A DNA stretch of 62,415 nucleotides, counting the filler, from Platydemus manokwari (lineage: Eukaryota): the NCBI GenBank assembly GCA_037951405.1. It is 6 parts of 6 records of this genome, joined end to end, with 100 filler letters (N's around TTAATTAATTAA, not from the genome) between each part and the next. Parts side by side here need not be neighbours in the genome. Positions count along the whole stretch, not along the records: positions 9,886 to 20,864 come from JBBMOY011002192.1; 5 more parts are not named here. One strand, 5' to 3'. The notes beneath the pieces were generated by a model. The model worked only from the letters and a program-made list of their open reading frames with translations, was not told the origin of the DNA and searched no databases. A program made the position numbers and the translations under genes. Below are positions 9,886 through 20,864 of this stretch, piece by piece; the stretch's first letter is position 1, and each line of letters opens with the position of its first letter.

Positions 9886-9992
9886 TTATCATTATTAATA
9901 TTATTAATATTATTATTATTAATATTATTAAATTTTATATTAATCATAAATGCTAATGATAATAAAAACAATAACTGTTAACAATAAAATAC

Positions 9993-12900
9993 CTTGTACT
10001 CTCTATTATTCACCATTGCTCCTAGTGTATATCTCGATATTTTTCCTGATCTTGTTCTTGGAATGTCAGGTACAATGACTACATTTCTGAATAAATTGAA
10101 CTTTCCTATTGCTCTGGTAACTAATTCAATAGTTTGATCGATCACTTCAACATCACTTACAATTCGACCTTTTTTCTTAACTATGAATGCAAATGGAACT
10201 TGACCTTGAAATTATAAGAGAAGTGATGTGATAATCAAAATGATATTAAATGAATTAAAATAATTGTTGATTCTTGGTGCGTAATTTATAATATAAAATT
10301 AAATTTGTAAGAAAAACTTTGGCCGACTTTTATTTCATTGAAAGATTATTGATGTGTTAAATATTGATCAGTGTCATGTAACTACTGTACTCGGTGATGA
10401 ACCGCTAATTAGACTGAATGAAAGGTTAAATTAGACTGTATTTCGATTTAATAATTCGTAAAGGTTCTTGTTTCTCAACTAGTTACATTTGGAGGATCTA
10501 ATTCATGAAATAAGTTGTTAAAGATTTGTAAATATTTTCTCTAAATTTTATATTATCAGTAACAGTCACATCGTTACTATTTGCAGACATAATATTTATT
10601 TAAAAATCTAAACTAATCCACCAATCGATTATTTAAACAAATATAACACTGCTCTTTCAGGTAGCTGTTATCATATCTTGTCCCGTCCTGATGACTCTTC
10701 CAGCTACCTCTTTCGATTGATGCTGAAATGGTGAACTGAATTCTTGTTAGATTTCCAATTTTGAACATGCCTCTTCCTTAAAATTGCATTCAAATTGTTC
10801 CCCGTTATCGGATTGAATGCTCTTTGGCTTTCCAAAACGGTAACTGAACGAGTTAAAGATGACCTGGAAGACTGTCTTTTCGTCTTGCTTAAATGTAGCA
10901 ATGAGGCTCACGAATATGTCCATAATGCCTACTAGATAATTCCTGTTACTATGCACCGTGTCATTTTAAGCAAAGAACACCACGACCTGTTTGTGAAACT
11001 CAAAACCTAACTGAGGAAGTAAAAACAGCTTAGTTATGGATTCACCAATCTTTCTCTTTTCACAGATAATACATACTTTCAATATCACTATGATGGTATT
11101 GAAAATGTCGGGCTAATAAAAACTTTGGTCTAAATATGTAAACCTTCTTGGAGTCTAAGTGGAAGAGTTCCTGTGAATTGTCTTGACAAATTGAGTGGCA
11201 AAACTTTCAGAATTATAGCAACTAAATCTTCCTCTTTCGCCAGCATCAGCGTATTGTCGACAACCTTAAGCGTTGCTATGATTCTCTACTTTGCTCTATC
11301 TTAAATTTAAATCGTATTCTGACCCCGTTCGCCACCCATGCTAAAAAATGTGCAATTTTAAAACCTCGAACGTAGTTTGACTTGCTAATATCACTCTTGC
11401 ATGGACTTTTTACTCCTATTCCGAGCAGGATTTATATCACATCTTCAAGTTTTGCTTCTAATAATTATAAATTAATAGCCACTCTTCTGTATCTCCAAAT
11501 ACTTTGTAGCCTCATTTGAATTTCTTCCATCGAATTTTTGAATATTGAAATTAAGGACTTCCTGTGATTGTTTCAGCAAGCTGTCACGTGGCTGCTTCCT
11601 CTGCTGATTACTTTGATTTGTATGGCGTGGTAGCCAGTTACATCAGAGACATTCGCACACATAATATTTATTATTTAAAAAGCTAAACTAATCGACCAAT
11701 CAATTAATTAAACAAATATAACATGTTTGTTATTTAACCACGTTACTGCAACCATATGTTTTTCCAGGCCCCTATCGGATTAGTCATTACAGTACCGACT
11801 TCAACTACAATCTCTAGCTGCATAATAAATGAGTTATACCGATTTATTACAACCGATAAATTATCAATTATTTTATTTTAATAACAATTTATCGATTAAA
11901 TTATTAATTAAGGATTTTAATGTATTTTTTGAAACTTTTTCTGGTGATTTGAATTTCAATCTCGTTAACCAATCGCTTAGATTTATGGTCTCATTTGGAG
12001 CTAAGAAATGATGGATTAAGCAGTGATGAAAACCAAGATTATTTTGCATTATATTCCAATATCAACCTAAAAAAATACAATTCTATTTGAAAGAATTCTT
12101 TATTTTCTCTCTTATAATGAAGGCTTCGCATTAGTGTTACCTTGTTCTCTTGTTAGAACAACACCAAACAAAACCATTTCAAAATTTAAATAAATTTTTT
12201 GATAAATTTTCTTACCATTAATTTCATCGTCTAATGGTACAACTGCTGCTTCTATTACGTTTTCGTTCTGTAAACATATCTCCTCCAATGCTCCTCCAGA
12301 AACTCGAGCTGCACAAACTTGTATTATGTCATCAGCACGTGACAATATCTTCAATTGTCTATCATTTGTCAACACAGCATAATCCATGGTATCGTAATAT
12401 CCCTATAAGAAATATCATCAATTGCTTTCATCATTCTATTATTGAAAGCTATTTGTTTTCTAGTTAGAATGTTTGTCTTGGAAATGTGCAAAAAATAGGA
12501 TGATGAATTTTAAATAACGATTTTTAATTGATTGGATATAAGAAAAGAATGTGTCAAATAATATAAAATTGAAATGAAAATAAAAAATGAAATTTTTTTT
12601 CTACTAAGACTTTTTGATGTTTATACACCATTATACTTCTTGTACACCATTAGAAGGCCCATCCTATTCTCTACACGAATAAAATAACTTTTATTGCTTT
12701 AATTATTTTTTATCTTTTTTAGAGCCGTCAAATGGATTGTCAATAAACTAAAAATCTATACGTCTTTCTTTTTGCCTTTAATGAGGTCGAAAAACGAGTG
12801 AAGCTATCACAGATATTTGTGCAAAATATAGTTGAGAGATCTTCTTGGATTGGTTTGCCCTGTTTAAACACGATAAACTCGACCTTAACGACGTTCATCA

Positions 12901-15900
12901 TTTCAGAATACCTATAGAGATAAACCAACTCGAAGATTCTTTGACGGATGATAGCCACTAGACATGCAGAGAATTAAGAGAAAAGATGAATTGTGATTTT
13001 CAGACAATTTCTGTCGATGGTTTTCACTCAAAAGCTTGTATTTTGGGTTCCGCGTGAACTTATTTAAAAACACGAGGATAAGCAGATAATTGATCGAAGC
13101 GTTAATAATTTGCTGTTGAAAATCTTTGATTTCTATGATAATAAATGTTCAACAAACTGCGGAAACTTATGGAACAACCTAATTATTGTGTACTCTTTGT
13201 CATAACAATGGTCAAACACAGCTTATAAAAACAAAATAATAAATACCAAGTACATTATGAAAATAAACGATTAACAATAGGAAAACTACGAATTGATATT
13301 TAATTCGAGGTAAGATCCGTCTAAAACTTTAATGGTAATGAAGACAAGGCCTTTACGAACAACATGGGGATGTTAATGTTATTTGATCCAATAAATATGC
13401 ATCAATTCAGTGTTTTTAACAATCTTACAAAATTAAACAATAAAAAGCTTACAGGATATCTTTGGAAATATGTTCTCAAAAATCTTTCGTGATCTTTGTA
13501 GAACGAAATGGCCATTGAAGGAACCCAAGGTTTTTTCAGAAGTAATTTTCCAGGACTTTCGTTTGGTAAAATCTCACCTGTTATATCGTCTACAATTATT
13601 GGAATCATATTTGGTAAAAGAACACAGTCATTGTAATGATCTCTCTTAAATCCAAATCCAGGCGATGCTGCTGTAGCACCGATTTCTGTTTGAGCCCACA
13701 CATCGTATACGGAGCATTTGAAAGATTTTGATATCCATTGTGTTGTCTCTGTATCAATTAATTCACCTAAATTATGTAAAAATCAATACTAGAGCATAGG
13801 GGTGGTTGGATAGGTATATATGAAAATTTTAGTGTTATAAAATTAAAAACCAATCACAAAGATATTCCAAAGACCTTTGAAATAACACTTCCTTAGAACA
13901 CCAATAGTGAAATAGTTTTATAATACAAAATGTCATAAATTTTCATTTTATGTCTCTCACTTTTAATATTCTACTAACGATAAATATGCTATAATCCAAT
14001 ATTATGTTAACAATTTTGACTCCAATCATCATACGTGAATCCCGATAATTTTGCAAACCATTTGTGAAACTGTGGATTATGTGATCATTGGAAGTTACAA
14101 ACATTTCATCAAATAAATAATGTTTAAAATGAATATTAAATTCATGGACATCTAAAAGTTCCTTTCTAGTAAGAAAATATTTCTTTTCTTTACTATCAAG
14201 CGTTTAGTCACCAATGCAACCAATTTCTCATTTCCTCTCTTTAGAATCAGGAAAGCACAAATTGCTCCTTATTTTTTATCAATACCCGATAACATCTCTT
14301 TTTAGTGTTGGAAAAGCTAGAATCGTTGCCATTCATAATCTCTCCTTTGGTTTATGAAAAATTTAGATTTTTTGGTTCTTTCAATTCTCCTCTTATTTTA
14401 GGACATATCAGTGAGCAGTTAATATAGTATCATAGGATAAATCTGATTTATTTCTTTCTTAAATATTCCTGGTCTTGTCGATATTGGTTTCTTTAGCTTT
14501 TTAACCAATTATATGACGTAAGAAATTTAATTTCTTATTACCAAATACACGTCTTTCTGGTTGATAATCACCCGAAAACGGATTGAGTTGTGCTCGATTG
14601 TCTATAAATGTTCTTCCATAAAAATATTGTAGGAATAAACAAAAACGCCTTTGTAAATCCAGTTTCTAAATATTCATCTCTGAAAAGTTGCTGGATGGAT
14701 AAAAATTCTAAAAAAATAATCTATTAAAACAAAACTGTTTATTCTATGTACTGAAAGTGATTTTCAACTTTGAATCGTTCTTAAGCTTGATTTGACAGCG
14801 CACATGACCCAAATCTATCGTTGCAATAACCTATAACTATAATCTCATTAAATGATTTCAGTAACACCTGAATATCTGGCACCGAAAAAGCAAATTTCTC
14901 GAATTTTATTTCAATTTCCAAAGATCTAGGTACATTGCTACTTTTCATCTTTCCAAACCATCAGCACGTTGTAGGACACTATTTTCTAAAAGGATTCTCT
15001 CACACATTTCAAATTGTTTTTTGTACATTTATTGGCTGTTATTTGGGATTTTGTGCAATCCAATTTCCCTTTCGTTGGAATTTTGTACTTGATCAGGTTT
15101 GTTAATTCTTGTTTGAATCCAGAAGCTATAAATATCAAACCACATTTCCGGATACAATTTCTCAATGAAATATCATTGGCAATAGCAATACTTTTCATAG
15201 CTATTTCAATTCTGTCTTCATTACTATTGTCTTTGATGTCTTCATTTCTGACATCAATTGTTTTCATTTTTGCTAGAACTACTCCGCCTATCTATATCAT
15301 ATCAACTCCACCAATAAAATCTGGTAAGATTTCTTTTATCTCAATAATGTCCATCAAAGATTATTTTATTTCATATAATATTTTCCACATAATATTCAAC
15401 GTTAAAAGAAAAACTTTTATCGATTTAACATAATACCATTAAATATGAGCATTCCATTACGTTCTCAGCTACGTTTACTCATTAGCGTTCTTGATGCGGC
15501 AGAATCTTATAACATTTTGAGATTGGTTCTATTTGATTCTACCACGATCAATTGTCTACCATCTACCTCCTGATTCACTTGAAAACAAGTCTTAATATGT
15601 GTCACGTCTCACCCATCCATAGTCACTCTATCATTTGGCTTTAACCATCAACTCGTTGTCTAACAACTGACAATCTCAAAACTTTGACATTTGAAAAAGT
15701 GCAAGAAATAAGAGACCCCAACTGCATCATTGGACAAAACCTTTTACTTATGACTAAATCTCTGACGTCATATATTTTTATTATTTCGAAACTAATTCAA
15801 AACACTTAATCAAATGCCTCAGATATTTTTATTATTGTTAGTTAATCTCAAATAAGAATTTGACCTCCAATAAAAATAGTTCTCAAATTTTCAAAAAGAG

Positions 15901-18029
15901 GTTCCAAATCCATTTCAGTACAATTATTTCTCAACATTCTCATGAATGTGGGTGCTGATACAAAAGTTACCACTTTATTTCGATTCATTGTTCTCACAAT
16001 TTCACCCGCATCTAGAGTTGATACTGGTTTGCCCTGGAAATATTTTTATCAATTCCATCATATATGAACAACTATTGATAGAACTTCATAAATAATTGTT
16101 GTGCTTCTTGACAGCAATACACAATAGCTCAATAACGTTTGACCTGTAATCCATCCAAAATCGCTAAACATCCAGAAACATTCTCGATGTTTCAAGCCAT
16201 AAACGTATTTCATAGCATATTTGTTTGACACAACAGAATTTCCTGTGCCTATCATTAAGCCCTTTGGTTCACCTGGTGCCAGAATAAAAATTTCAAAAAT
16301 TAATGTACGAATAAAATGCTTTACCAGTAGTTCCAGATGTATAAATGATGAACATAGGATGATTCGATTCTACCGGTACATGGAGTTGAGGTCGTGCCAA
16401 TCGCATTTCAACATTCCATTCCAAATCTCTTTTATCGATCATTTTAGCAAGCTCGCTATTTGGTCTGTTGTAAACGATACAATAATCTGGAATAAATTCG
16501 CTCATTTCGATAGCCAAATCTATGATAGCTTTGTAATTTATGACTTGAGATTGTTCGAAACCGACATTACTGGTAAGAATCAATCTTGGCTAAATCATAA
16601 AATAGTATTTCAAATCGATAATATATGATTTTTATAACTCAGATTTATAGTTATCAAGTTATTGGAACAAAGAGAAATCATCAATTTACTGTATGTTATA
16701 TGGTTAGGTAATCTAATGAATATCATGTCAATCAATAGTTGTCAATGAATCCGCTCTTTAGACAAACAGGAAATCCACATGTCAATAAATGATAAAAAAA
16801 ACCTAAAACATGTTAACGCCTAGAATAAATTCAAAGAGAGTCAAATTATGAATTATTTTTGTACAGAAATCATCATTATTTATCAATCTTTTTTATGGCT
16901 CGATTTGCATGGTGATTGAGTTCTCTAATTTCATAAATTTTTCATATTTGTTTAAATTCATATCATTTTTTTAAGTGCTATATTGGTACAGAAAAGTTAA
17001 GAAAAGAAATTTTTAAGTTTATCTGACACATTTATAAATTTCTTTTCACGAGAAATAATCAGAGATGAATTCAAATTCCATTGGTCAAATAATTGACAGT
17101 AGAGGACCGAATGACATGTTGTTGAGGCATAAGTCACATACAAAAGCTTAACCAATAATATTGGAAAATCGAAATTCAATAAATAAGGTTTCATTGGATT
17201 ACTTATTGATTATAATGCGGTCTTTGAGAAACAAACAGTATTGGAAATCATTAATAGAGATGAGTGCTTAATTAGTTTATACTGAGAATGATCTCTTGGA
17301 AATATCAATAAATCAATCAGTAAATGTTAGCTCTTATCATATATAAATGAGGATCGCTTAGCTCATTTTATTTCCCCTTTAACGGTAGCTCAGTAAATAA
17401 TAAATCGATAAAAAACAATCTCATATTTTGTTGAAAAATCGAACTTGTAGGTGTTTGATTCTTGATGAAATAGCTTTTGAAGAGAATCCTCCAAATGTTG
17501 CCGAATAGATGGCTCCTATTCTTGTACAAGCCAACATTGCAATCAAACATTGAGGAATCATAGGAAAATATAGTAAAACAATGTCACCCTTTTTCATTCC
17601 ACATTTATCAACCATCACACCAGCTAATAATTCGACCTGAATTGATTACATGAAAACATGATTGGAAATATTATTGATCGATTTACTGATTCAAGAAGGT
17701 GTTTATAAGTGATTTTTTCAGTAGTATTTGTCACTGGACTTTCATGAATGACAGCCACATCATTTCCATATCCTTCTTCAATAGCTCTATCTAAGCAATT
17801 GTATGACATATTGATCTCTCCTCCTACAAACCTGTCATATCAAAGATTCAATTCAATTTTATTAATGATATTCAAACTTGATTTACCACTTCATAGGGAT
17901 CGAATCTTTATTTTCCAGCACACTGGTGTACGGCTTGTCCCAAACTACTTCTTGGGCGACCTCATCCCAAAATTTTTCTGGTTGAGAATTACTTAATTCA
18001 TATAATTCATCATAATCTAACTTCAACAT
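9993..18029 (-). CDS. ACSS3: Acyl-CoA synthetase short-chain family member 3-like (9 exons, 605 codons; terminal exon missing at the gap)
   Basis: Exons 18029-17887, 17831-17687, 17636-17445, 16589-16325, 16272-16085, 16033-15865, 13766-13453, 12402-12216, 10204-9993; all GT-AG and in phase. Motifs [56 protein letters not shown] (ACSS3/PrpE-type), PRTRSGKI. Confidence 0.93.
10565..11723 (-). mobile_element. Internally deleted Ty3/Gypsy LTR element with two short (~85 bp) LTRs, in ACSS3 intron 8
   Basis: Diverged direct repeats 11637-11723 and 10565-10648, both beginning TGTTATATTTG on the minus strand; TGG PBS-like site after the 5' LTR; integrase HHCC remnant (CIICEKRK) and core ([19 protein letters not shown] 10747-10956). 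Confidence 0.8.
12732..13090 (+). mobile_element. mariner transposase pseudogene (N-terminal half) in ACSS3 intron 7
   Basis: MDCQ*...FLFAFN...[12 protein letters not shown]...WVPREL (mariner WVPHEL motif at 13044); stops and frameshifts present. Confidence 0.8.
14000..15450 (-). mobile_element. Degenerate Ty3/Gypsy pol remnant in ACSS3 intron 6
   Basis: FIGGVD (protease end), [13 protein letters not shown] (RT start), TLDSKEKK and HYLF...[12 protein letters not shown] (RNase H) in canonical order with many breaks. Confidence 0.6.
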
Positions 18030-18279
18030 GATTATCAATAATTTTCAATCGATTTATGATTTAAAACCAAATAAATTGATTCAAATAAACAAAATGCTAT
18101 TGGTTAAATAAAATAAATAAGATTGAATAAGTTCATTATATTTATAATTTTCAAAATTAAATCATTATTTAAATATAAATTTTATATGAAAATATTAAAT
18201 TATAAACTTTCACTTTACTTTTACCTTCTGATAACACAATCAATAAAAAAATTAAATTCATACGAAACTGATCATTTTA

Positions 18280-18650
18280 TTAAATATAGCCCTATCTGTA
18301 TGAGGTATTGCAGTAATAGACAGAAGGAAATTCTTGACTGATATCACAAAATTGTATCAAAATCCAATCTTTGTTTGACAGTGAGTGTTTTAGCCTTGAC
18401 TACAGAATTGTGTTCTCCATTGTCTGTCCATTTTCATTTTCAAATTATTATCTAGCTTCAAAGTTGTGAATTCCAATCCTTGATTTGATCTTTCTTATGG
18501 TCAAGCAGTCTCTATGTATTTTGTAAATAAATAACAAAATTTGATGTCCTCTTATAAGTTCATTTTCACCTAACGCAATGGTCTGAATTGTATATCAGAT
18601 ATTGATTTCAAATATAATGAACCTATTTTGCTCTTAAATTCAGAAGCATC
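18280..18650 (-). mobile_element. Possible LTR integrase remnant
   Basis: ENGQ...RLKHSLSNKDW...ITAIPH resembles the Gypsy integrase NGQxER...W...TPH stretch; heavily decayed. Confidence 0.3.
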
Positions 18651-20781
18651 ATGAAACCGAATTCATGAAAACGGAAAACATTAAAATAAATAATAATAAT
18701 TTCTTTAAATCAAAAATCAATATTGACAACTAGAATATTTTGATTTGGAAAATATTTATAGACAAGACATCTCACGGCGAATTCCATTTGACATACAAAT
18801 TCATTTGATTATTGATTACTTTATTGGTGTGCTCAGTATTCGATTACAACCGTACACGACGTGCAAAGTATAAAGAGCTCGTCATAAAACTAAAATCTAT
18901 CTCAGTGTATTCCAAATTTTCGAATGTTTTCAAAGCATATCAATCAATAACACTTCACTTTCAATCACTTATTTAGTTGTATTAATGTAAATGGCGGAAA
19001 TTTTGAAAATAAAAATTGAAATTGAAAATCTTTACAAATCGAATATTAGCAGAGGGTTCACTGAAGGACATTCTATAATTCGTTACTCTATATGTTACTT
19101 TAATGTTTCTATTTATGGAAATAAAAATATCCCAAAATAAAAAAAATATATTTATAAATCAATTTAAATGATAGCCAGATTTTATTTAAAATAAATCGAT
19201 AGATAATTTAATTATTAAATAAGCTAATCAATTCCATTAATGATTGATTTAATGTTGTAAAAATTCAAAGCAGATTCTCTTAGTTGGTCGATATTACTTT
19301 TCAATGAAATCAGTTTCTAACTATTGTTTTTGTTTGTTTTGATTTCTCATTTTAGTTCGTTTTAAAATTAATTTAATTTCCTTCATCTCATTGAATTTCC
19401 ACGCGTTGAAGTTATTTTTTACGAAATTTATTTATTTTATCAATAAATGATTCCTCAGTTACGAATTTTCTTTTTATTCTTTTCACAAATCTCGAAAGAT
19501 TTATCATAATTATAGTAACGGTTTTCTGCTTTATTTGGATTTGTTTGATTCTTCATTTGTCGTCGGGGTAAATATCCCAAACATATTTAATATGTCACAT
19601 TTCCTTCTATTATATATTACCATATTATTTATTAGATCAATAAATTCATCGTCAAACTAGTTTAAATTGTTATATAATGAATTAAGTCACAGTTTATGGT
19701 TGATAAGATACGATCATTGTTAAATGCGTCAATACGAATCCGAAGCAAAAAGATTATTTTTTTCAGTATTCTAATGGTAGATATCTATGTGCAGTCGTAA
19801 TGCTTTATATTTATCGAGAAGATACTCATCATCTTAAAAATTGATTTTGCTTCAATACTAAGAAGGGATTTATAAATCATCTATTTTCGAGTACATTTGT
19901 AATTTCTATCATATTTTCGCTGAAGTGTATTGTTGTACAAATATAATTTTATCGTACAAAACTGATGTTCTGAAATTATAGAGGACCAATGACATCATAT
20001 AAAATATTTGATATTCTTCATCTCTCCACCTTTTTTAGTTGTGAAATTATAGTTATTTATAGAAAAGTTTAATAAGCATTGTTCTTCTTCGATAACATTG
20101 TCAATGTACAAGGGTGTGATCGTTCGAGCAGAAAATAACTTATTAAATATACCGTTTAATTCTACCTGGGGTTTTGATAACTCTAAGACTGATATAAGTT
20201 GCGATAATTCTGATAATTATAATAATATGGATACATGAAATGGACATCAAGTATATTTCGAAAAATTAAAATAAATAAAATCGATAATTTAAATTTTTCA
20301 TTATCTTTGTAATTTTTATTTTGTTGATTTAAATTTTATTTATTGAGACCATTTTCTCTTTTAAATAATTTAAAAATAAACATTGATTACAACACACCAG
20401 AAATTCATAAATTAATGATTGTTTCATTATCGATAAAAATAATTAATAAAATAAATCATATCTTGTATCTTAACCCAAAATAAACAGAAAATCGATATTT
20501 GAATCAATAATTTATTTTTAAACACAATTCTTGAACAATCTTTTGGAACCGCGTTTTCGAGTCAAAAATTTCTTCTGAGAATCTTCACTGATCGTAAATG
20601 AGTAATAATACTGTGTAAAATTGATTTTTACAATCATTATAATTATTCAATATAAGTATAACTACAATGTATAAGTGAATATTAATACTCGATTTTACAA
20701 GAATATTTCTTTGTTTCACAGGGGTTTTAGCTTATTGATTTTTAGTGAATATTTTGATGATCATTGTCGACGTCTTGATCA

Positions 20782-20864
20782 GTCATCATCGATGGCAACC
20801 TTTATGCTGAACAACTACAGCGAGTTCATGATGCTTTGAGCACTCGCTACCCAGGACTGTTGAA
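20782..20864 (+). mobile_element. mariner transposase internal fragment cut by the gap
   Basis: Open frame VIIDGNLYAEQLQRVHDALSTRYPGLL matches the mariner segment just before the second catalytic Asp (Y..QL.R...L..R.P.L). Confidence 0.8.

Follow-up and report, generated by a model that had tools for sequence, protein, structure and literature searches.

The question raised by this locus is whether an animal acyl-coenzyme A (CoA) synthetase of the ACSS3 type that has lost the tryptophan closing its acyl pocket is still an enzyme, and for which acids. The gene lies on the minus strand of a piece of the Platydemus manokwari genome (JBBMOY011002192.1) that occupies positions 9886-20864 of the window, the whole stretch of 62,415 nucleotides (nt) that was analyzed. 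In textbooks, this tryptophan, called the Trp wall, is the residue that sets acetate- and propionate-activating enzymes apart from medium-chain enzymes. On balance, we lean toward an intact ACSS3-derived adenylate-forming acyl-CoA synthetase that belongs to a small, fast-evolving, and taxonomically restricted subfamily, in which the Trp wall has given way to a small residue and which would act on acids larger than propionate.

The original prediction, made from the sequence alone, had read the motif at the Trp-wall site as DVWAQTEIG and had equated its Ala with W414 of Salmonella Acs. Direct reading of the minus strand and translation both return this motif, for which the family consensus is D-x-W-W-Q-T-E-T-G; its codons are GAT (13704-13702), GTG, TGG (13698-13696), GCT (Ala, 13695-13693), CAA, ACA, GAA, ATC, and GGT (13680-13678). 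Searches were run per exon or with database proteins. Comparison of exon 7 with the PDB chains by phmmer aligned the Ala with the Trp of V-D-T-Y-W-M-T-E in C. neoformans Acs1 (CnAcs1; 5ifi_A, SEQRES 453). This position is Trp439 in the numbering of the paper, with the offset of 14 checked through Gly412, Thr441, and Glu442 (PMC8383264). CnAcs1 Trp439 has been named the "Trp wall" and equated with Trp416 of AcsMt (PMC8383264), which is in turn equated with Trp414 of AcsSe (PMC10455477), so that the correspondence with the Salmonella residue holds. In an alignment with the Acs/PrpE/ACSS3 family, the check that had been proposed, 351 of the 357 full-length members fetched have W in the Trp column (351 of 353 when the gene's own clade, described below, is set aside), with Ala in the window. 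The exceptions are only this small clade and two unrelated Acs-like proteins.

Those two proteins, P0010 (651 amino acids, NAYGQTE) and P0051 (658 amino acids, NLYSQT), have no Trp wall, and their WxTGH strands are altered too. In the wider family, the Trp wall appears to have been lost naturally on more than one occasion.

The substitution was also looked for in public sequencing runs, of which only X1 contains this DNA, in the form of contigs; X1 is possibly the source sample of the assembly itself. An X1 contig of ~80 nt over ~13632-13713 differs from the window, among the differences listed, only at 13668, 13674, and 13680. The finding of TGG in reads had been named as evidence that would speak against the substitution; among the differences listed for the X1 contigs, none falls at 13693-13695. 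The support that X1 lends to the Ala codon is modest. An assembly or sequencing error at this codon was considered and is unlikely, since X1 has no difference listed there and distant relatives also lack the Trp.

Two further elements of the pocket are altered, both of which the original prediction had pointed out. The pocket strand reads WITGQTL at 16153-16133, where the family has GWVVGHSY, with His replaced by Gln, Ser by Thr, and Tyr by Leu; in the census, the His column is H in 351 of 357 members and Gln in the clade only. The other element, predicted as FIGGE, is found as TIFIG at 15880-15866, continuing as T-I-F-I-G/G-E across the junction of exons 6 and 7, where PrpE/ACSS3 proteins have xAGE and Acs proteins xVGE. 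The Gly contributed by exon 6 stands at the site of Ala in PrpE/ACSS3 and of Val in Acs (V386 of AcsSe, V411 of CnAcs1), a column that holds A in 344 members, V in 9, and G in 1. With the Trp wall shrunk to Ala and this second pocket-limiting site to Gly, the acyl pocket would be open. The predicted enzyme would still form acyl-adenosine monophosphate (acyl-AMP) and then acyl-CoA, and its putative substrates would be carboxylates that exceed propionate in size, whether of medium chain length, branched, or bulky in some other way. By analogy with the published W-to-G mutants, it is reasonable to expect that the pocket is probably wider and admits larger acids.

The closest relatives of the gene share the loss. 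With exon 7 as the query, an all-against-library HMMER search returned just three matches below 1e-10, namely, P0001 (625 amino acids), P0002 (401 amino acids), and P0003 (454 amino acids), all of them without the Trp (SAWSQTEL, NSWGQTELG, and NVWGQSELG, respectively); P0230 (636 amino acids) is a fuller version of P0001. Across the window and the clade, the Trp-wall site holds Ala, Ser, Gly, and Gly, small residues only, and FSDFGWI[TS]GQT is common to the members in which that region is present. Each of the nine exons finds its best blastp match in this clade, at 43 to 68% identity, and the next matches are mostly animal ACSS3. The gap between the clade and the rest of the family is wide, with profile search scores falling from 864 to 472 bits and an identity to PrpE/ACSS3 of ~35%. 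On the sequences compared, the loss of the Trp is an old feature common to a small subfamily rather than a peculiarity of this one gene.

Word-index searches, with P0001 or a profile built on the four members as the query, added none to the clade, whose members are the only close relatives found among billions of proteins. Metagenome scans gave no confirmed relative of P0230 and 0 hits for the degenerate FSDFGWI[TS]GQT pattern, and the ESM Atlas returned generic propionyl-CoA synthetase clusters only, with no cluster for the clade. P0001 and P0230 come from intronless contigs of ~2 kb, most simply explained as transcripts, which makes expression of the subfamily in another species probable.

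The ancestry of the clade was explored with IQ-TREE under LG+C20 with posterior mean site frequencies (PMSF), using 35 rows in which P0230, P0002, and P0003 stood for the clade and the joined protein of the window was left out. The clade together with 19 animal ACSS3 proteins received a support of 100/100, as did the clade alone. The canonical animal ACSS3 proteins without the clade were monophyletic in 0 of 200 bootstrap trees, and a quick tree with Acs-like outgroups agrees with placement among animal ACSS3. The stem of the clade measures 2.49 substitutions per site versus a median terminal branch of 0.56, and its fine placement inside the animals is limited by long-branch effects. The predicted ACSS3 ancestry is borne out by this placement and by the best matches of all nine exons. 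Horizontal transfer from bacteria was considered and rejected, given the eight spliceosomal introns and the position of the clade inside animal ACSS3.

The gene itself is a single spliced unit of nine exons, amounting to 1815 nt or 605 codons, with zero stops or frameshifts. The exon borders were read from the sequence and then checked by script. All eight introns are of the GT...AG type, with lengths of 55, 50, 855, 52, 51, 2098, 1050, and 2011 nt, and the G+C content is 29% for the AT-rich piece as a whole and 36% for the exons. Residues 1 to 40 of P0230 align by tblastn with 18029-17910 in exon 1, at 60% identity. The order of domains along the gene, ACAS_N, AMP-binding (exons 3, 4, and 7), and AMP-binding_C, is the layout of the Acs/PrpE/ACSS proteins (ANL superfamily). 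The Arg that corresponds to the CoA-contacting one in Acs is retained in exon 3.

Features of the ACSS3-like gene in the window
Feature	Positions	Strand	Details
Exon 1	17887..18029	-	ATG at 18029; ACAS_N domain (Pfam 8.3e-13); donor GTAAAT
Exon 2	17687..17831	-	Acceptor TGACAG, donor GTAAAT, frame kept; best blastp match P0230/P0001, 67%
Exon 3	17445..17636	-	Start of AMP-binding domain (Pfam 5.6e-11); splice sites
Exon 4	16325..16589	-	Ends YTSGTT + G, first half of the P-loop (A3 motif); Pfam AMP-binding; best match P0003, 55%
Exon 5	16085..16272	-	(G)EPKG finishes the P-loop; pocket "WIT" motif within 16168-16133
Exon 6	15865..16033	-	Ends TIFIG + G; Gly codon GGA at 15868-15866
Exon 7	13453..13766	-	(G)ELIDTE...DVWAQTEIG...FQRYP; Ala392 (GCT 13695-13693) at the Trp-wall site; Pfam AMP-binding
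Trp-wall motif DVWAQTEIG	13678..13704	-	Family consensus D-x-W-W-Q-T-E-T-G; minus-strand reading and translation of 13767-13405
Exon 8	12216..12402	-	GYYDTMD (ribose-binding Asp), SRADD (Arg); QVCAAR at the place of NVAGHR(I/L)S
Apparent decayed retroelement integrase fragment	10747..10956	-	Pfam rve 4.2e-05, 24 bits, under the gathering score; outside the gene product
Exon 9	9993..10204	-	AMP-binding_C (Pfam 3.3e-05); PRTRSGK at 10061-10041; ends ...NNREYK, then donor GTATTT

Beside the exons, intron 8 carries three overlapping open reading frame pieces in differing frames (10613-10956, minus strand); one of them gives the subthreshold rve (integrase core) match, and the pieces resemble the remnant of a decayed retroelement. 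An AT-rich, microsatellite-like run (TTA / ATTATTAAT units) occupies window positions 9886-9944 at the edge of the piece, ~50 nt downstream from the donor site of exon 9. Rfam and tandem-repeat scans gave nothing relevant.

The N terminus differs from that of canonical ACSS3. The stretch before the conserved FW tryptophan counts 20 residues in the window, P0230, and P0002, versus 34 to 114 (median, 70) in the 19 animal ACSS3 proteins and 16 to 32 in bacterial PrpE. All three short proteins start with ML-x-L-[DE]-[YF]. Upstream of the ATG at 18029, an in-frame TGA occurs at a distance of 18 nt (window positions 18030-18047), with no AG acceptor between them, and the ML.LD start in common with P0230 and P0002 suggests that translation truly begins at this ATG. 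The subfamily therefore appears to be devoid of the mitochondrial extension of canonical ACSS3, and the short N terminus would probably place the protein outside the mitochondrial matrix.

Several observations weigh against an intact enzyme with a widened pocket, and they are set out here with the explanations that they favor. MacsMa has another Trp, Trp259, in much the same place as the lost wall (PMC10455477), and because of this, the loss of the wall alone is no proof of an open pocket. In LiAcs1, the behavior of the pocket is likewise not wholly predicted by the residue at the Trp wall. Both examples, and the nesting of the clade inside animal ACSS3, speak for the gene as the lineage's own fast-evolving ACSS3 orthologue and not an extra paralogue, still acting on propionate or acetate with other residues compensating. 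No canonical ACSS3 of this organism came to light, in an analysis whose searches did not extend to the rest of its genome. We consider the orthologue reading rather unlikely: the restriction of the site to small residues (A, S, G, and G) across the clade suggests selection for small size, two more pocket elements have shifted in the same way (Gly in place of Ala at the V386 site, in the window, and QTL in place of HSY), and the N-terminal extension has been lost. The subfamily also looks multicopy, as P0002 and P0003 have neighboring UniParc numbers and are ~46% identical, and X1 contains several copies.

A second group of observations concerns the rest of the protein. Of the 136 columns conserved at ≥95% among 353 nonclade members, 97 are unchanged in the window and 33 are changed, the remaining six being split codons or part of the absent last exon. 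Many of the 33 differences are common to the clade: H161 to Y, G282 to N, V313 to T, H315 to Q, S316 to T, Y317 to L, and W416 to a small residue (P0009 numbering, which equals that of AcsMt at the pocket residues and is off by a few residues at C-terminal positions). The NVAGHR loop reads QVCAAR in the window, with Gly and His lost and Arg kept, and the Arg equivalent to R584 of AcsSe, a CoA contact, is replaced; both sites are variable across the clade. The departures from the near-invariant columns, these two included, could reflect relaxed constraint or an altered second half-reaction. The two changes on the CoA side, the change of about a quarter of the near-invariant columns, and the very long stem of the clade fit an enzyme that has left acyl-CoA synthesis, either adenylating its substrate for another acceptor or being a noncatalytic derivative. 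This seems improbable to us, given that the P-loop YTSGTT(G)EPKG, QTE, the Asp of YYDTMD, which binds ribose, the Arg of SRADD, the loop Arg (AAR), the Arg of GGFS..SRI, and the catalytic Lys of SGK are all retained. Moreover, the Gly459Ala substitution has little effect in MacsMa, and AcsMt Arg586Ala is still active (PMC10455477); since these variants remain active, the loss of residues on the CoA side need not abolish CoA ligation.

The last points bear on whether this copy is alive. A last exon of ~30 codons lies beyond the edge of the piece, leaving the C terminus incomplete in the window; it is placed there because full-length P0230 runs ~30 residues further (VPSTVRNVESF...). In X1, 61 of 113 contigs are 90 to 95% like the window and pile up on the exons, and the summed contig depth over window positions 12100-18040 reaches 60 to 240 in exon bins versus ~13 in introns. 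An X1 contig of 1177 nt links exon 7 to exon 6 through a much shorter intron, with 17 of 206 aligned bases different, a sign of one or more additional loci or of a haplotype that has diverged strongly. The gene is probably one of several similar copies in the genome. The differences listed among the X1 copies touch 34 codons, 13 of them synonymous and 21 nonsynonymous, with no stops. The synonymous share (38%) compares with ~24% in the absence of constraint (P = 0.046), and the ratio of nonsynonymous to synonymous rates (dN/dS) is roughly 0.5; this synonymous excess among similar copies is weak.

A member of a multicopy family that died recently or is decaying, its Ala being neutral drift, would account for the similar X1 copies, for nonsynonymous differences outnumbering synonymous ones, and for the retroelement fragment in intron 8; no RNA run with this locus was found among the public sequencing runs searched, of which X1 alone contains it. 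Such decay is nevertheless very unlikely in our view. The 605 codons in nine exons are free of stops and frameshifts, the splice sites are canonical, the catalytic motifs are intact, and the synonymous share exceeds that expected without constraint. The absence of the Trp is, in addition, common to relatives that are only 36 to 45% identical in exon 7, so that it predates the copy in the window. The original prediction is supported in part: the motif, its equivalence to the Trp wall, the altered pocket motifs nearby, the ACSS3 ancestry, and the open reading frame stand; the status as an extra paralogue and the bulkier carboxylate are putative. The prediction needs amending in that the substitution belongs to the clade as a whole and comes with ~33 other near-invariant changes and the loss of the N-terminal extension.

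If the preferred reading, an ACSS3-derived synthetase for acids larger than propionate, is correct, the clade would repeat in nature the opening of the pocket achieved in the laboratory by W416G. The Trp wall has so far been probed mainly by mutagenesis. A natural subfamily of this origin would show how an enzyme scaffold for short-chain acids can give rise, in animals, to acyl-CoA synthetases with new specificities. Its members are only ~40 to 50% identical, yet they have in common a small residue at the site, a remodeled pocket strand, and the loss of the targeting extension, and they offer ready-made sequences for substrate-range studies and engineering. The automatic label "ACSS3, propionyl-CoA synthetase" is probably wrong for such genes in both function and location. 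More tentatively, and with greater doubt than for the reading itself, an invertebrate lineage may have turned mitochondrial ACSS3 into multicopy, presequence-less, presumably cytosolic synthetases without the Trp that feed an unrecognized pool of medium-chain, branched, or unusual acyl-CoA. Such a pool could serve the use of diet- or microbe-derived acids, detoxification, or lipid or secondary metabolism.

No paper on a Trp-less ACSS3 or on an expansion of ACSS3 was found in the literature. The nearest known systems are animal ACSS3, a mitochondrial propionyl-CoA synthetase, and bacterial PrpE, with which the gene shares the three-domain layout and the ACSS3-type strings SPVTNT..ITY, NRPN, PGYYDTMD, and ..EYK. 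The nearest solved structure is 5GXD, the best relative of P0230 in the PDB (2e-124, with an end-to-end alignment). The gene departs from canonical ACSS3/PrpE in its low overall identity, only ~35%, and in specific motifs, where GWVVGHSY has become GWITGQTL, (L/F)xAGE has become FIGGE, HWWQTE has become VWAQTE, and NVAGHR has become QVCAAR.

In the literature on CnAcs1 and AcsMt, the Trp wall separates acetyl-CoA synthetases from medium- and long-chain synthetases, and AcsMt W416G accepts acids up to ~C7 and branched acids (PMC8383264, PMC10455477). The gene resembles this mutant and the CnAcs1 model in the loss of the indole at the equivalent position. It differs from AcsMt W416G in that its change is natural, is set in an ACSS3/PrpE rather than an Acs background, and is accompanied by many other substitutions. 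MacsMa and the ACSM enzymes likewise have Gly, a small residue, at the Trp-wall site and prefer larger or branched acids. They are, however, not close kin: for the gene and its clade, PrpE/ACSS3 and Acs score much higher than any other ANL enzyme, and no Macs or ACSM chain is found among the PDB matches at 1e-20 or better. The small residue at the wall site is a mechanistic likeness to Macs/ACSM and not a sign of membership in that group.

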